Shown: positions 1-8,494 of the stretch, one piece after another
How the letters are laid out: each line of letters opens with the position of its first letter
Numbering within the stretch: the stretch's first letter is position 1
Source: Selaginella moellendorffii
Taxonomy: Eukaryota > Plantae > Lycopodiophyta
NCBI RefSeq assembly: GCF_000143415.4
Contig: NW_003314337.1
Span: 26,213 to 34,706 of the forward strand
DNA length: 8,494 nt
Direction of reading: 5' to 3'
Notes under the pieces: model-generated
Told to the model about the DNA's origin: nothing
The model's database searches: none
What the model saw: the letters and a program-made list of their open reading frames with translations, nothing else
Position numbers and translations under genes: made by a program

Positions 1-174
1 TATGATCTTATCTTCCCAAACATTCGCATCATTATCTAATTGCATTATTTTCCATTTCTCTGGAGATGAATAGTTGCAAAATTAAGATAAATTTAACCTT
101 GCATACAATCAAAATTTATAACATTGAACAATTAAAAATGAAGATCTATTTATCTTGGGTATGATATATCTCCC
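1..174 (+). repeat. Helitron subterminal repeat copy A (truncated at the start of the 3' hairpin)
   Basis: Aligns by eye with 1200-1369 (cattt..tggagatgaata..agataaatttaac..ttatcttgggtatg.tatatctccc) and with 2375-2450. Similarity stops at 'tatatctccc', the first arm of the hairpin. Confidence 0.75.
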
Positions 175-489
175 TGAAAATATTTCAGCATACTCATTGT
201 TCTATAGAACAAAACCTTTACAGAACAAAGAGTATTTTATTGATTCAATACTATATTATTAAAATTAAACATAATTTTGTTGTGCAAAGATGGTATATAG
301 TAGATACAATAGAAAATACAGTACAAGACTAGAATAGAAGACTTCACTCAACAAAGAGAATTTTAAATATAAACTACTCATTGCTATCTCTTATGGCTTG
401 ACATCCAGATGATAAATATTCCAAACCATCTTCAGTTCCACCAACTAATAAATCATAATGATATAACAAATGCACGATACAATGAATAT

Positions 490-588: not shown

Positions 589-1199
589 GGCAAGAGAGCA
601 CGGGTCTTAGGAGAGTGATGGTTATAAGCTTTCATTCATGAGGGTGTAAACTTACAAAAGAAGTATGGTGGATTATATGCAACAAAAAAGAATAATTTGA
701 AAGATGATATATATAAAATTAAATATAAAGGGAAAGGATTTTTAAATAAAAGTGCACATTTTATTCCAATTGGTTAAGGGTATTAGGATACTCGGGGGGT
801 TTAATATCTTAGGGTTAGAGTAGGATGACCTCCCAAAATGTTGAAATTCCAGAGTTTTCTCAAATAAAACAAAACGTGGTAGCAAGCTAGATAGATTTAT
901 TTATGTATGTTTTAAAATGTTAAACCAGACATATAATAGAAATTCTATTTTTATTTAGTAAAGTGTGAATGTTAGAGGCATCATTATAGTTCACATAAAA
1001 AGAATTTAACTCAGTATGCAATTAAAATTATAATTTCTCTAAACTAATCTATTATTTTTTGGTAGTCTATGATTCTTTGGTTTTGTGAAAATTTAATTGC
1101 TTTTAAAGCATGACAGCAATGCTGTAGATGTATTTAGGGTTGTGCATTTTTAAATAAAGACAATAAAAACATCAAATTCAAATTTAATGACAATAAAAA

Positions 1200-1392
1200 A
1201 TGATTTTACTTCCCCAACATGCATTATTATTTATTTACATTATTGTACATTTCTTTGGAGATGAATACTAGGAAATTTTAGATAAATTTAACTTTATATA
1301 TAATAAAATTTTCTAATATTGTAAAATTAGAAAAGAAGAATTAATTATCTTGGGTATGTTATATCTCCCAGTGGAGCTGGGGTCTCTGCTAA
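1200..1392 (+). repeat. Helitron 3'-end copy B (hairpin plus CTAA)
   Basis: CCCAGT-GGA-GCTGGG hairpin (1367-1381), spacer gtctctg, CTAA (1389-1392, fits CTRR). About 170 bp upstream is similar to 1-174. Confidence 0.75.
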
Positions 1393-1520
1393 GATTATGG
1401 ATTCTGTTATAACTACTGAACTCTGTAATACACTATTATATGATATTTACATAATGTAAGATGGATGTTGTAGAAAATGCTAATCTTGAAGACTGAAATA
1501 CTTAGTCTGAGAGTTCTAAG

Positions 1521-1790
1521 ACCACATATATAGATTAATATATATAATCTAGCAGTGATAATGTTATTATACTCTATTAATTATAGTACCATAAAAAAAT
1601 ATAACAATATTATTATTTAAGTGCTAGATCTATGTTTATAAAATATATTAATATGTCTTATAATCTATGTTTGTTGATAATCATGTTCTCCTTTAGATAG
1701 TTGCTGTGTTTAATAATTTAATTTTAATTTTATGATTGAACTGAAATTTTTTAGATCTTAATAATCTTATAATTTTCTATAATATGTGGT
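1521..1790. mobile_element. Putative non-autonomous TIR element (MITE/MULE-like), about 270 bp, AT-rich
   Basis: Ends are inverted repeats (ACCACATAT-ATAGA... and ...TCTATAATATGTGGT). The element is flanked by the exact direct repeat CTGAGAGTTCTAAG at 1507-1520 and 1791-1804. Confidence 0.5.
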
Positions 1791-2374
1791 CTGAGAGTTC
1801 TAAGCAATTTTCTGGCTCTTCCTCATTTTTTTTCTCTCTTTTGTGTTTGGTAGTATGCTCATCAAACGCATGTGTAGCACTGGTGCAACAAAAAAGAGGA
1901 CACCATCTGCAAGATTTGTCAGCAGGTACATCATCTGTTGTCATGTTTGCTGATTTGCTGATTAAGAATCTTTTCTTTACTTATTATATGTTATCTCTCA
2001 ATTCCATTCTCACTTGGAGGACTTGGGCAGTTACTATTTGATCACTTTCAAATGAATGCCTAGATTAAAACACATGGTAAAAGGGTTGAAATGCTTTTAT
2101 TCATTTTTTGTGACGGTTTTGCCCCATAAAGAGGCACTTGTACAGGAGGAGCTCATTGTTTGTGGATGCAAGGCCACCTGTGTCTTGCTGAAACCAGGAG
2201 CAAAGTTGACTGAAGAGCTCGAGTGATGTCTTCCTTCAAAGGCATCCCAATGGTATGGAGTTGTATGGCATTGAGTCATGTAGAGCTGTGCATGGCCAGA
2301 ATGCCAGTCTTTTGCATTTAAACAATTGATATCAAGAGAAAGAAATTATATCTTATAACAATTGATATAATATC

Positions 2375-2473
2375 ATTTGAACTTGTATATAATCAAAATT
2401 TTTAACATTGTAAAATTAGAAAAGAAGATCTTGGGTATGCTATATCTCCCAGCGGAGCTGGGGTCTCTGCTAG
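2375..2473 (+). mobile_element. Intact Helitron 3' terminus (copy C): GC-rich hairpin plus CTAG
   Basis: CCCAGC(2448-2453)-GGA-GCTGGG(2457-2462), 7-nt spacer, CTAG (2470-2473) followed by T, which is the canonical Helitron 3'-end architecture. The upstream sequence matches copies A and B. Confidence 0.85.
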
Positions 2474-2702
2474 TCAAACTCTTTATTTAAAGTTGCTATT
2501 TTGGCATCGGCGTCACATATTCCATTTTTAGAATATCCATTTTTTCTTATGGCAGATGCTCTTGATTCAACAATCCAGATCTGTGATGCTCCAAAGCAAT
2601 GGTGAGGATTGTGACATGGTGGCAAAGAGCTTGGTTTTAGGTTTAAGAAACGGTTATTATGGCTGTTCACAAGCCACCAGCGACTTGTGAACCTCTAGAT
2701 AT

Positions 2703-3561
2703 TACGCTACAAACCATCTGTGGGTATGCGCCATGGAATTTTTCGGGAGTCTTGACTCTTTTCTTTCATTTGTTGTGATGTCTAGGCCATTTTCTTCTCA
2801 CAAACTTGCTCCTGGACAAAATGATGGAGACTGCCAACGAAAGTGGCATCTAGTGAAGAATTGTCAATCTCTCCTCCACCACACACATCGCCTCTTACAG
2901 TGGTGGAATCCAGTTCTCACATCTTAATGACAAAGCCTGGTACACCAAACGATTTTCTTTTCTCATGAGCTTACATTCTTTCTTTTTTCTTCCAAAAGGT
3001 ACTCCGACACTAGAGCATACAGTCAATCCAAGCTCGTGAACATCCTCCATGCCAAAGAACTGGCAATGAGATTCAAGGTATTTGTCTAATGCTTTGAAAT
3101 CTCTCCCACCTTTCTCTTTCGTCAATGCTTTCTCTTTCGCTGATTATGCCGAAGGAGTTGACATCACAGCCAACGCTGTTCACCCAGGGTTTATAATGTT
3201 GCCTTTGATGTGGCACACATTCTACATAATGAGTTTGTCTGTTTTCGGTTACTTATGGAACTTTGATCTTCATGCAGGGTTTCTCAAGTTCTTCTCCAGC
3301 TTCCTTTGGAAAAATGTGCCACAGGTAAGAAGAATTCTCCCAATTATCTGGAAGTTTTTCATGACTAATACGTGAGTGATCTCTCAGGACGCTGCTACGA
3401 CGTGCTACACGGCTTTACATCCAAGCCTCAAGGACGTCACCGGGCAATACTTCGTGGATTCCAACAAATCCATCTGTAGCGCTTATGGCAGAGATCCCGA
3501 GCTCGCTCACAAGCTATGGACCTTCTCCCAGGAGCTTATAGACAAGCATTCTCCGTCCTAA
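2703..3561 (+). pseudogene. Short-chain dehydrogenase/reductase (Tic32/retinol dehydrogenase-like), 5'-truncated pseudogene fragment
   Basis: Exons: ~2703-2723 (ATNHL), 2786-2939 (GHFLLTNLLLDKM..RIVNLSS), 2999-3077 (YSDTRAYSQSKLVNILHAKELA, YxxxK motif), 3148-3232 (ITANAVHPG), 3278-3324 (LWKNVPQ), 3388-3561 (AATTCYTALHP..stop). Lesions: TAG TGA at 2851-2856, a 2-bp insertion near 2721, and acceptor AT at 3146-3147. The N-terminal Rossmann fold is absent. Confidence 0.92.
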
Positions 3562-3671
3562 AGGTAAAAGGCTGATGGTGCTAGAGAGCGAGCGAGCAAA
3601 CGAGGACAACTCGGCAATGATTTGTGGATAGACTGTATTTACTCTTCTCAAAAGCTTGAGCTCGAGCTTGA

Positions 3672-4511
3672 TCAAAAGTAAGACGCGTTACCTACATTGC
3701 GCATGACTAAAACTTTGGTTCGAGTATGTCGTCCATCGCGTACTTGACACCCTCTCGTTGGATTGCAGAGTCTTTGATCCCACCATATGGCTGGCTATCA
3801 ACGCACATGCTTGGCGAATCGTTGAGGCAAACTCCTCCAGCTTGTGAAGGTCAAATAATCATCAAACAAACGATCAATACTTTATATATCTCAAACGCAA
3901 AGCTACCTCTATGTGCTCAAACGCATAGAAGGCCTTGTTTAGATCATGCATAAACATGCCGGCTTGGAGACCACAATGCGTGTTGTTAGCTTCCTTCACG
4001 GCTTCCTTGAAATCACTGCGTCACCACCAATTTAGTTTAGAGAGAGTAAATAAAAACTTTGTGAGCTAAGAAACTTTGAGAGCCTACTTGTATGAGTAGA
4101 GAAGGATCACAGGACCGAAAATCTCTTCCTTCCTTGCGTCTGTGTCAAAGGGAGCGTCTTCCAGGATCGTTGGCTCCATGAAAGCTCCCCTTAGCTTACC
4201 ACCAACTAGAAGTTTGGCACCTGCCTTCACTGCCTCGTTCACACTCTTCTCTACTATAGCTGCCGACGACTTGGATATCATGGGCCTGATGGACGTGTTG
4301 TCTTGGCGAGGATCTCCACCTTTGATTTTCTTAAAGGCAGCAATCAATGCAGCCTTCACCTACACAACCAGCACCAAATATGTTAGATCAAAGCTTGATT
4401 TGAGAACAAAGAATACGATAGAATTTAAAGACGAGTGTCAGATACCTCCTTGTAAAGGCCACCTCTCACGTAAAGATGCTGCATGTGAATACATGACTGG
4501 CCACTTTGATA
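3672..4511 (-). pseudogene. ALDH21A1: Aldehyde dehydrogenase family 21, C-terminal pseudogene fragment
   Basis: Exons: 4511-4446 (YQSGQSCIHMQ, catalytic Cys at 4493-4491), 4359-4088 (..EPTIL..EEIFGPV), 4015-3907 (EAVKEANNTHCGLQAG), 3841-3672 (RVD-like CVDSQPYGGIKDSAIQREGVKYAMDD..KVLVMRNVG). These match recalled moss ALDH21A1 motifs. Lesions: a 1-bp frameshift near 3720 and acceptor AA at 3843-3842. The 5' half is missing. Confidence 0.9.
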
Positions 4512-4740
4512 TATTGGTGCTTTTGTTATATATGCTAAGTCCACTTACAAGGCTCGACGACTTCCAGACTTACGCGGGGAACAAATCCGCCGGCATCCGC
4601 CTGCGCAGGTGCATTTGGTAGATCGACGTGCTCTGCTCAGAAATGTGACGAGGATTGGGAGTGAAAGGCGAAGAGGCTCTGATGGAGCGCACGACAGGGA
4701 CGACGTCTCGGAGAACGAGGGGATTCACGTTGTCATCGAT

Positions 4741-4869
4741 GACTAGAATCAAGGTTCTTCACTCTCTTGCTCGTCGCTATTCTTTTTCGAGTCTCTGTTT
4801 GTCCCAGGTTCTCGAGGCTGGAACCACGACTAGAATCAAGGTTTTTCACTCTCTTGCTCTTCGCTATTC
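4741..4869 (+). repeat. 42-bp direct repeat pair, each spanning an AAG|GT splice donor
   Basis: 4741-4782 versus 4828-4869: 40/42 identical, offset 87 bp. Confidence 0.9.
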
Positions 4870-4904
4870 AACCGTTTTGATCATGTTTTGGTGGGATCGT
4901 GCAG

Positions 4905-6212
4905 GGACGTACATCTGGAGCAAGCCTGTGATGAAAGGAACGCACCCTTCTCCTCGGGACAGCCACAGCTCCATGGCCGTCGGGTCTAAGCTCTATGGGT
5001 TTGGTGGTACCGATGGAACCAGCCCGCTAGACGATCTCTTTGTTTTGGATACTGGTAAGCGAGTTCTATCGATTTTTTTTTCTTGTTCTTATCTTCCGAT
5101 GCAGCTACCAACACCTGGGGGAAACCCGACGTTTTTGGTGATGTTCCTGCTCCGAGAGAAGGACATAGCGCATCTCTCATCGGTGACAACCTGTTCGTGT
5201 TTGGGGGATGTGGGAAATCCAGCGATCCCTCAGAGGAGGAGCACTACAACGACCTCCATGTTTTGAACACAAGTAATATCCTGTTATCTTTCCTGGTTTT
5301 CTTCTAAACTCTTTTTTTTCCTGTAGATACTTTTGTCTGGAAGAAGATTTCTACCACTGGAGTCTCGCCTATTCCTCGGGATATCCATACCTGCTCTTCC
5401 TATAAGAACTGTTGCGTTGTCATGGGCGGCGAGAATGGTGGTAATGCCTATCTATATGACATTCATATTCTGGACACAGGTACATACATTGTGCTGGTTT
5501 TAAACTTGCGAATTCATTTGTGTTTCCAGAAACAATGGCATGGCGGGAGGTAAAGACGACTGGTGCCGAGCTGATGCCAAGAGCTGGTGAACGCAGAGCG
5601 AGGCATATTATTCTTCTATGGGGGATGTAATGAAGAGCTTGAAGCTCTGAATGACATGTATTTCCTCGACACAGGTTGGCTTCTTCTTTTATTGACATTG
5701 CTGCTGACAATATGGTTGCCATTTTTCTGTGAAAAGATGCTGAGGGAGAAAGATCCATCAGAACCAAAGCTACCCATGCGTAAGGAACTTAAGAGAAGGC
5801 GGCAAGAGTATCGTGCCACGCCATTCGTGCTAGACAAGCAACGGGATGTGGACAAGAGCTTGGTTTCATCTCACGGAGGTATCTGCAGAAAACCTTGGAC
5901 CTCTCCAAATTTTCTCTGTCAAACTCATGCTACAGAGTTTCAAGCTCACGTTCAGCCGCTAGGCGAGAAGATGTTCGAGGCTAGAGTAAGCGACGTATTC
6001 AACTACGGATACACGCTAGAAGCCTCCATCGATGGGAAGCTCTTCCATGGGCTGCTCTTCTCGTACAAGCCTGGCTTTGCTCAGGCAGTGCAATCTTACA
6101 TCCTCAGTTACTCTCTAATGCCAGGAAGGAAAACATCACAGGAGGAAACCACAGGACGTCCAAAAGGCCGTAGTAAAGGCTAACCGAGCAAAAAGAAGTT
6201 CAAAGAAACCAT
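4905..6212 (+). pseudogene. Plant Kelch-repeat (galactose oxidase/Kelch beta-propeller) gene fragment, 5'- and 3'-truncated, with an internal deletion
   Basis: Exons: 4905-5054, 5105-5272, 5327-5479, 5530-5674, ~5735-5878, 5936-~6105. Kelch motifs PSPRDSHS..FGG, PAPREGHS..FGG and PIPRDIHT..MGG, plus the C-terminal FEARV..GYTLEASIDGKLFHGLLFS block typical of At1g18610/At1g74150-like proteins. Frameshifting deletion at ~5588 (PRAG|VNAERG); acceptor AA at 5733-5734. Confidence 0.9.
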
Positions 6213-6239
6213 GGATATCTATACCTGCTCTTCCTATAA
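6213..6239 (+). repeat. 27-bp copy of Kelch exon sequence 5379-5405
   Basis: GGATATCTATACCTGCTCTTCCTATAA versus GGATATCCATACCTGCTCTTCCTATAA, 26/27 identical. Confidence 0.9.
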
Positions 6240-6553
6240 TTATTAAAGTTTCACAAAGTCTTTATTACACAGCCTCACCCTTTCTTTGTTCTTCTGGATT
6301 ATCAGTTGTTTCTTCTTTGTCTACACAATACAAAAGATTGTTTTTTAGTAATGTGCTTTTTTTTGTTAGTTTACCTTCTTTATAATCTTCTGTAAACACG
6401 GACGTGAAAAGGTGATACACTGCTAGAATCCTTCCTAATCGACTCTCTTTTGCAGAGTGGGTGCTAATACATGGTCCCTACTTTACACTTCTATAACGCA
6501 AAAGCTACAGGCTTGCCACAAAGAGGGGTATAAACTGGTGAAGTGCAATGATT

Positions 6554-6986
6554 TCCCTCCTCGGAAACGGTAGTGTGGTTGCTCTAGGATCTGACTGGCC
6601 TGTAAGCCTGTCAAATACTTTTTCTTCTGTGTTACATGAATGGTTTGTCTCAAGGTGGTAGCAGTGAATCCACTTGGAGGAATCCGCACAGCCGTGGAGA
6701 GAACACTTCAGGCTGGAGTCATCCCGAGGAAAGGATTTCTGCATGGGACGTAGTGGCAGGGTAAGAGATAACAGATGAGAAACTGAAATGCAGTTTTTGT
6801 TTCTGGATTCACAGGTACACATCCTCGGCTGTGTATGCAGCTGCATTGGAGGATTTGGTTGGGTCGCTGATGCCAGGAAAGTTTGCTGACTTTGTGGTGT
6901 TGTCTGAGTCTCCTTTTGGACAGGGCACGGGCATTTTTCCTCCAGTGGTTGTGTTCGTTGGTGGAAATTTTGCCTTCCCTTCTTAA
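6554..6986 (+). pseudogene. LAF3: Amidohydrolase (LAF3/YtcJ-like, Amidohydro_3) 3' pseudogene fragment
   Basis: Exons: ~6554-6601 (SLLGNGSVVALGSDWP), 6655-6760 (VVAVNPLGGIRTAVER, frameshift, PEERISAWD), 6815-6986 (YTSSAVYAA..GSLMPGKFADFVVLS..FVGGNFAFPS*). GT-AG introns of 53 and 54 bp. Confidence 0.85.
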
Positions 6987-7029
6987 GGCGTTATTCCATA
7001 ATTATTTGGTCTTTTAAATATAGCATATT

Positions 7030-7350
7030 TGCGAGAAGATTGGTGAGGAGAAAGCAGCCAGAATCATCAAGCAGCTGGTAAAGACCTTCAAAGAGATTTA
7101 TTTGAGGGGCGTGGTTCACCAGAATCTCAAGCTCGACAACATTCTTTCCAAGCTAAACATGCATGACAAGTGGTGATCAGCACCTTTAGGATATATCACA
7201 ACAGCGAAGTACCTGGCAGCTGAGGTGGTGGAGAACAAGGATTGGAGCTCTACATGGCAGCCATCGAAATGTGGGGGCTAGGAGCAATTTTATACAAGAC
7301 GCTGGGAAAGGGAGGATACCAGCCAATGGAAGCATTTGATCTCATGTGAC
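7030..7350 (+). pseudogene. Highly degenerate Ser/Thr protein kinase fragment (CAMK-group-like)
   Basis: EEKAARIIKQL..GVVHQNLKLDNIL (HRDLKxxN equivalent from 7117), TAKYLAAEV (APE equivalent), and after a frameshift EMWGLGAILY (DxWSxGxILY equivalent from ~7266). An in-frame stop is present and the DFG region is missing. Confidence 0.8.
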
Positions 7351-7846
7351 AGAGGACGACCTCTGTTTCGGATCCACGGCCAACATCTTAGAAAGGAGAT
7401 CCTCCGCTGCAAACAAGCAAGGACCAATCAGGTTCAGGTTCGATCAGGTTCTGCAGGTGTGAAAAGGAGTGCTCCCGGCCTTGAGAACAAGAAAGTTTGA
7501 GTGGCTTAAAAGAAAATGCCAGCAGTAAGTTCCTATTTCCTTTTCACCATTACTAACTTCATTTGCTTGCGTTTTTCTTTTTTGTATTCTCCAGACATCA
7601 ACATCTCTTATGTCTATGGCTGGAAAACATTTTCAGTGGCTTCCGAGAACAACTGCAGAATGAAAACAAGTTGGAACGAAAAGGAAAACGAGGGAGTTAA
7701 AATGTAAAGAAAGAATTGTAAAACGTTTATTGATATATAAATAAAGATCAAAGTTGAATCGAGATCTTTCACTAATCATCGAATATATTTAAATGAAAGA
7801 GCCTCATTGATCATTGCCGTAGGTGGCTCTAATTTTATATATATAA

Positions 7847-8165
7847 AATATTGGAAGTTTCAAACCAAATAATGAAAAATATGCAGCTTATTCACAATGA
7901 AATATTTTAGATACTGCTCAAGCAACGGAGATAAAAATAAAAAAACAAACACAATTCTAAATGCAACGAGAAACTAATGGGTGGTCTTGATAAATTATTA
8001 AAAGAGATAAATCCCTATACTAATGCATTCACAATATTGTAAGAAATAGAGAATGAAGTGTTAAAATTAACAAATTTTCAAGGAGGCATAAGTGATATCG
8101 TAATACATATAAAAGGCAATTAGACAACTGATCCAAGATAATATAATGCACTAGGTTCAAATGAT
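7847..8165 (+). mobile_element. Degenerate Helitron Rep/helicase (RepHel) N-terminal coding remnant
   Basis: Frame 2 reads NIGSFKPNNEKYAAYSQ*NILDTAQATE. After a frameshift in the A-run near 7940, frame 3 reads NSKCNEKLMGGLDKLLKEINPYTNAFTIL*EIE...[12 protein letters not shown]. This follows the recalled RepHel motif order IGSLxP / AQLYIxDT / NPYxxxF / DxRRYNxP. It may extend upstream to ~7757 (ESRSFTNHRIY). Confidence 0.82.
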
Positions 8166-8302
8166 TTTAAACATTTAGTTGTACAAAGATGGTATTCATT
8201 GATGAATTTTTTTATTATGTCTACTATGTACGATATATTTACAACAAAAAATATGTTCAATATGTTTAAACATGTATTATCAAATCAATCATATACTCTT
8301 TC

Positions 8303-8305
<3 letters not shown>

Positions 8306-8392
<87 letters not shown>
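8306..8392. repeat. (TA)n microsatellite, about 43 units, with a degenerate tail to ~8414
   Basis: Perfect TA dinucleotide run seen directly. Confidence 0.99.
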
Positions 8393-8400
<8 letters not shown>

Positions 8401-8494
8401 ATGTATACATATGTGCTGGCTATACAAGAACATGGTCTGGAAAGAGGTTGGAGAGCTAGAAGCTAAAGCAAAAAATGCAAATATAATGACTTAA

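Follow-up and report, generated by a model that had tools for sequence, protein, structure and literature searches.

A gene-fragment mosaic in Selaginella moellendorffii as the probable fused cargo of two non-autonomous Helitron families

Two cargo units and their probable fusion

We analyzed an 8,494-nucleotide stretch of DNA from Selaginella moellendorffii (hereafter the window; GL377641.1:26213-34706 in GCA_000143415.2, identical at 100% to positions 5320-13813 of locus L009), in which positions 2474-7768 hold a block of gene fragments. We explain this block, with a probability of roughly 0.78, as the cargo of two non-autonomous Helitron families that lie head to tail and became fused in the window copy. 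Unit A would comprise a 5' TC leader and the 3' parts of a short-chain dehydrogenase/reductase (SDR) gene and, in opposite orientation, of the single-copy aldehyde dehydrogenase gene ALDH21, while in unit B an almost complete Kelch gene would be joined by the tail of an amidohydrolase gene, part of a kinase gene and the end of one or more further genes. All close protein matches to the cargo come from S. moellendorffii. An earlier, sequence-only reading of the same DNA had rightly named a non-seed plant as its probable source and had taken the block for one mobile element. Its view that this is Helitron cargo captured as DNA stands, and its single element gives way to two families, each of which is found alone elsewhere with termini of its own.

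The window was compared by blastn with eight other loci of the same assembly (L001-L008). Unit A, the SDR fragment followed by the antisense ALDH fragment, recurs in L002, L005, L006 and L008 at 93-95% identity, and the ALDH fragment recurs by itself in L007. Unit B, with its Kelch, amidohydrolase and kinase fragments, recurs in L001-L005 at 88-93% identity and with various internal deletions. Counted with the window, A is present at five loci and B at six, on different scaffolds and with the same fragment order. L006 carries A without B, and L008 shows no B within the locus; L001, L003 and L004 carry B without A. L002 and L005 have both units, with order and orientation kept and more than 10 kb of shared sequence; there the body of A, a hairpin-CTAG end and the leader of B lie between the two. 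The same deletion and tandem forms show up as contig joints in public sequencing runs. The cargo is multi-copy, with shared order and shared junctions, and has spread with its carrier; the dispersed copies that the sequence-only reading had named as support for its claim were thus recovered by blastn of the fetched loci.

The window copy differs from these loci in how the two units meet. Homology to the A copies of L002, L005 and L006 stops at 4550, homology to the Kelch-bearing copies begins at 4551, and both the 4.4-kb body of A and the leader of B are absent at this point. A public-run contig that matches the window from 4550 onward carries unlike DNA before it. The direct ALDH/Kelch junction at 4550/4551, which joins ALDH to the first Kelch exon and may have formed via deletion, recombination or template switching, was absent from all eight other loci compared.

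This distribution bears on the alternative of a single non-autonomous Helitron that captured all five fragments named by the sequence-only reading and moves as a whole, its ends being the TC at 2474 and a hairpin-CTRR beyond the window. Such an element would not be expected to have its halves parted by a 4.4-kb body, a 3' terminus and a second leader, as they are in L002 and L005, nor to occur as A without B and as B without A, and the junction that would define it is found in 0/8 other loci. The window taken alone does look like one element, with a single 5' terminus, at 2474, and without a 3' terminus inside it up to 7769, and the shared A-then-B arrangement of L002 and L005 has different outer flanks and a left limit that is exactly the TC of A. 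The latter arrangement also fits read-through co-mobilization past the 3' end of A, and we consider the single element unlikely.

The 5' boundary of unit A provides the clearest view of how these pieces are delimited. Its leader of about 63 bp, with TC at 2474-2475, is present in four other A copies and aligns with the 5' leaders of other family units (alignment A1). A precise CTAG/TC junction precedes the leader in the window, in L002, in L005 (twice) and in L006, and across L002, L005 and L006 three different kinds of Helitron DNA lie upstream of it; in L008 the leader is preceded by (TCA)6 instead. Because the identical leader sits behind a precise CTAG/TC with differing upstream DNA, this boundary bears the signature of a transposon terminus, unlike that of a segment that was merely duplicated. 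A patch of pseudogenes amid Helitron debris that was spread by segmental duplication and then decayed, with neither capture nor transposition by Helitrons, could account for the many indels and replaced segments by which the copies differ and for the more than 10 kb that L002 and L005 share in the same order. Such duplication does not account for a left homology limit that falls exactly at CTAG/TC in five places behind three kinds of upstream sequence, for limits of B that fall on hairpin-CTAG in L003 and L004, for copies on at least nine scaffolds, or for source genes that are unrelated, one of them single-copy in the species (PMC7823795). We therefore regard segmental duplication as very improbable.

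Complete sister copies carry the 3' terminus of CTRR and hairpin, A in L002 and B in L003. In the complete A copies (L002, L005, L006 and L008), about 4.4 kb of AT-rich family backbone lies beyond ALDH, and A's own 3' end is the hairpin-CTAG at L002 9542-9569, followed directly by the 5' leader of B (TACTCATATATTTAAAC...). In L003, unit B is complete: its leader lies at about 9760, the cargo behind it has a guanine-plus-cytosine (GC) content of 43-47%, and an AT-rich 3' part leads to the hairpin-CTAG end at 15474-15499. L004 holds a 98.4% twin of this copy, interrupted by another element. Helitrons insert between a host A and T; in L004, a T comes after each of three free Helitron 3' ends, and the neighbors of the window copy are other Helitrons. 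No duplicated flank that would mark a target-site duplication was seen at the junctions examined. Pack-MULEs and CACTA elements also carry mosaics of gene fragments, yet terminal inverted repeats are absent around both the block and its parts, and the ends found are Helitron ends. Introns with GT..AG borders are kept in the SDR, ALDH, Kelch and amidohydrolase fragments, as the splice signals and exon maps of the window pieces show, which rules out retroposition for at least these four. We give this last group of explanations, namely another gene-capturing transposon or retroposed mRNAs, a negligible probability. The retained introns imply uptake of all pieces at the level of genomic DNA, and the likely route would be template-switch, filler-DNA or end-bypass errors of rolling-circle transposition.

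Several points weigh against the explanation by two fused families. Both homologies break exactly at 4550/4551, the end of the ALDH piece, a point that a random deletion would be unlikely to hit. The composite 3' end was not seen: there is no hairpin/CTRR at 7729-7768 or at 8268-8307, and masking hides the next 2.8 kb of the scaffold. The nine loci contain neither HUH nor Walker A nor any further RepHel motif, and the autonomous partner is unseen there. The assembly holds two haplotypes, and the copy counts given above may be inflated as much as twofold. The public runs, finally, are Logan contigs whose depth gives no copy number. The approximately tenfold difference in summed contig depth between the two halves of the block speaks weakly against a single element.

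Composition of the captured cargo

The five fragments named by the sequence-only reading are real, SDR by tblastn and ALDH21, Kelch, amidohydrolase and kinase by Pfam, with PDB matches for ALDH21 and the amidohydrolase, and its observations that four of them retain introns and that the fragments are disabled were both borne out. A sixth fragment follows them (Table 1). The GC content is 44.7% in 2474-7768, against 26.7% in 1-1744 and 24.2% in 7769-8494, and these steps fall on the boundaries between cargo and backbone. The stop codon of the source gene is present in five of the six pieces, the kinase piece alone being internal.

Table 1 Features of the window, in window coordinates
Feature	Position	Strand	Basis
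H0, 3' terminal region of upstream Helitron: family 3' leader, hairpin 1367-1381, CTAA 1389-1392	877..1392	+	pattern search, regex
H1, separate small Helitron-like unit; ends in hairpin 2448-2462 and CTAG 2470-2473	1393..2473	+	hairpin fold, L004 copy
Unit A 5' terminus and leader (TCAAACTC...TATTTAAAG...TTTTTAGAATAT)	2474..2536	+	leader shared with sister copies
SDR fragment, C-terminal two thirds of protein, introns kept, stop codon 3559-3561	2692..3601	+	tblastn
355-bp unit, the last SDR exons, single in window	3243..3597	+	tandem in sister copies
ALDH21 fragment, C-terminal 45%, four exons, stop codon 3707-3709	3602..4550	-	Pfam, PDB
Fusion point of unit A and unit B	4550..4551		homology limits
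Kelch-repeat gene copy, N-terminal coding exon to stop codon 6181-6183, introns kept	4551..6216	+	Pfam
Chimeric gene model SELMODRAFT_425650 (P0027, 492 amino acids)	4682..7173	+	exact mapping to ten window exons
27-bp copy (96% identity) of Kelch exon 5379-5405, just past the Kelch fragment	6213..6239	+	repeat search
Amidohydro_3 C-terminal fragment; introns, internal stops, stop codon 6984-6986	6465..6986	+	Pfam E 3.8e-5
Protein kinase fragment (subdomains around catalytic loop), frameshifts and stop, no intron seen	7024..7335	+	Pfam Pkinase E 1.7e-5
Sixth fragment, a gene 3' end: intron 7527-7593, stop 7705-7707, AATAAA-like tail	7336..7768	+	open reading frame, splice signals
Further Helitron piece: 5' leader-like sequence (TCACT...ATATATTTAAATGAAAGAGCC) and AT-rich family backbone	7769..8307	+	alignment A1

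The identity of the SDR fragment comes from its protein relatives, and its parent would be a Tic32/RDH-like gene. Residues 112-323 of the adh_short protein P0150 align to 2692-3552 by tblastn (E 3.5e-44), spanning introns and two in-frame stops at 2851-2856, and an exhaustive protein search with the last SDR exon found proteins of about 320 amino acids that match the piece at their C-termini and carry adh_short at E 1e-19 to 1e-33. The exon with the Y-x-x-S-K motif matches SDRs in the PDB weakly (E 0.014), and the SDR pieces, including stop-free ones from better-kept copies, gave no match in Pfam and none in the ESM Atlas. The 355-bp unit formed by the last SDR exons is tandemly repeated in sister copies, with three copies in L002 (3126-3836), eight in L005 (11283-13764; seven extra before the contiguous copy) and two in L006, and a contig joint 3597>3243 in public runs corresponds to this tandem form.

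The ALDH exons at 3710-3850, 3877-4020, 4087-4359 and 4428-4544 on the minus strand match positions 257-459 of 461 of Pfam Aldedh, with E values of 7e-21, 2e-5, 2e-6 and 0.057 for the pieces, and the best solved relative is ALDH21 of Physcomitrella (5mz5, E 4e-27). Because the ALDH-only copy in L007 begins at the same left limit, 3602, the SDR/ALDH junction can be placed at 3598-3602. The two pieces are arranged tail to tail, with their stop codons 145 bp apart (3559-3709).

In unit B, the Kelch piece reaches E values down to 2.6e-14 in Pfam on single pieces and 4.5e-50 on a spliced model. Its N-terminal exon (4551-4759) is matched by the proteins P0013, P0035 and P0041, and since the piece spans the N-terminal coding exon through the stop codon, it is nearly a whole gene, disabled by a frameshift near 5590-5610; the parent would be a TEA1-like Kelch gene. 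The first Kelch intron contains an 87-bp direct repeat (4741-4869), which L003 carries as an expanded array of units (10090-10837). The 27-bp copy of Kelch exon sequence just past the fragment looks like filler DNA from a joining event. The amidohydrolase piece has amidohydrolases as its only PDB matches (E 0.03-0.045), and the order Kelch then amidohydrolase is repeated in P0004 (L001), P0009, P0031, P0032, P0035 and P0041. The kinase piece, with a Pkinase E value of 1e-4 within a spliced model, follows Kelch also in P0002, P0011, P0012, P0014, P0028, P0035, P0041 and P0081. Stops interrupt both the amidohydrolase and the kinase pieces. The sixth fragment (7336-7768), which by its splice signals looks like the final intron and exon of a gene together with stop and 3' tail, had no Pfam match. 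The stretch 7263-7455 is specific to the window copy, with loose contig ends at 7262 and 7456.

Two further observations concern the public runs. Contigs of a run labeled as another organism (run X4, 'organism B') are 98.5-99.6% identical to the stretch 5704-8305. Runs X1-X3 are made up of contigs only 120-170 nt long, with depth across the cargo being very high, and might be small-RNA-like or enrichment data.

Neighboring Helitrons and the downstream tail

A 30-base hairpin motif occurs twice in the window, against zero copies expected by chance in a pattern search, and each copy closes with a GC-rich hairpin of 6 bp, after which comes CTAA (1389-1392) in one and CTAG (2470-2473) in the other. 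The first hairpin (1367-1381) folds at -4.6 kcal/mol and the second (2448-2462, 6-bp stem) at -6 kcal/mol, and the regex search found no further hairpin-CTAR anywhere in the window. The base next to the CTAG at 2470-2473 is the T of the TC at 2474. The sequence-only reading had placed the start of the block here, next to a hairpin-CTAG terminus; the terminus is present and the block does start right after it, but it is the 3' end of the upstream neighbor H1 and not of the cargo element.

Upstream of H1, window positions 877-1371 in H0 recur in L002, L005, L006 and L008 at 78-88% identity. H1 itself has a twin in L004 (381-1094), in another context and on another scaffold, which matches 1745-2176 at 98.8% and 2277-2468 at 94%. 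Because of this 98.8% twin on another scaffold, H1 is probably the youngest piece at the locus. Its GC-richer core (1745-2340) had no Pfam or PDB match; an AMP-binding-like motif spotted by eye at 2130-2223 found no support in either database and was rejected. Short (TCA)n runs lie between a Helitron 3' hairpin/CTAG and the next 5' leader at L003 5855-5869, at L003 around 9745-9756 and at L008 11757-11775.

The tail that follows the cargo would be the 5' part of yet another Helitron piece. From 7769 it aligns with the 5' leaders of unit B (alignment A1), a contig joins hairpin-CTAGTC plus ACTC straight to 7783 onward, and sequence related to 7769-8307 precedes a hairpin end in L006. The stretch 7456-8307 is common only to L002 (89%) and is an insert relative to the B copies of L003 and L004. 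A (TA)n microsatellite (8306-8412) starts exactly where homology to L002 ends, at which point L002 reads ...TTCTTCTAG and continues into an inverted duplication of family backbone. Within this tail, the sequence-only reading had seen a RepHel remnant at 7941-8165, which we could not confirm: the segment has no Pfam match and showed, by eye, only a D-P-R-stop-Y-N motif, which a motif scan found only in L006. The same sequence is family backbone near Helitron ends and recurs at window positions 165-330 and in L002, L005, L006 and L008. The AT-rich bodies held no open reading frame worth scanning.

The locus is a head-to-tail stack of Helitrons that probably grew as new elements inserted at the 5' ends of those already present. 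The flanks of the window in its own scaffold are masked as N (L009 1-5319 and 13814-16592).

Gene models, known Helitrons and significance

The annotation of this locus illustrates how such cargo may enter gene catalogs. The gene model SELMODRAFT_425650 splices Kelch, an out-of-frame amidohydrolase exon, an in-frame amidohydrolase exon and the kinase piece into one protein, on which Pfam recognizes Kelch, Amidohydro_3 and Pkinase. By its exon map and the sequence, this model is an annotation artefact made of three unrelated gene scraps, so that the false chimeric models foreseen by the sequence-only reading are found at this very locus. A second annotated protein, P0139 (498 amino acids), consists of seven tandem copies of the 355-bp unit 3243-3597. 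The fragments themselves are disabled and would be of no benefit to the plant, with annotation pipelines splicing false genes from them.

The predicted inflation of gene families is likewise seen. About 40 S. moellendorffii models carry Kelch repeats, several followed by Amidohydro_3 or Pkinase in the same order; 15 short models hold the Kelch tail. Short ALDH models lie on at least 10 scaffolds with 82-93% identity, in addition to the window's own and that of L002. A review describes ALDH21 as a single gene in S. moellendorffii that is missing from flowering plants (PMC7823795); this dozen short ALDH models would therefore be transposon cargo. We trace both sets of models, about 40 for Kelch and no fewer than 12 for ALDH, to the same origin as SELMODRAFT_425650.

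Gene capture by Helitrons is textbook knowledge in maize and bats, and the features and behavior seen here are of the maize type. Like the non-autonomous Helitrons of maize (Morgante et al. 2005; Yang and Bennetzen 2009; in PMC12477314, PMC2575219), the units described here have a 5' TC, a 3' hairpin with CTAG and no inverted repeats, their short conserved ends enclose several pieces of unrelated genes that keep introns and lie in either orientation, and they form multi-copy families with variable insides that yield chimeric transcripts or gene models. They also sit near other Helitrons, as maize-type elements do (PMC12477314, PMC4778049). In contrast to maize, the host is a lycophyte, the elements form precise head-to-tail stacks in which CTAG leads directly into the 5' leader that comes after it, at times across TCA stubs, one copy joins two cargo units by fusion, and five of six pieces extend through the stop codon to the 3' end of the source gene. 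With the bat Helraiser/Helibat system (PMC4778049, PMC5876387) they would share a 3' hairpin as terminator, mobilization of neighboring DNA by end bypass and copy-and-paste spread. Unlike that system, they are known from sequence alone, their cargo lies just behind the 5' leader and not beyond the 3' end, and the autonomous partner was not seen in the loci studied. Full-text searches of one literature library found no description of Helitron gene capture in lycophytes or Selaginella.

A broader proposal can be made only tentatively, and we hold it to be possible but doubtful. This Helitron lineage may target the 5' terminus of resident Helitrons, and the resulting stacks may be co-mobilized or fused by read-through or template switching, recombining their cargo stepwise. 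The stacks would then act as a lineage-specific exon-shuffling engine, with the A/B composite amplified at least three times, and transcribed chimeric genes, SELMODRAFT_425650 among them, could arise from this process as well.

The main value of the finding lies in annotation hygiene, together with the material it offers on stack formation. Users of the S. moellendorffii v1 annotation inherit these errors in gene-family counts, domain-fusion surveys and orthology tables, and the precise CTAG/TC stacks provide material for the study of Helitron target choice and read-through.

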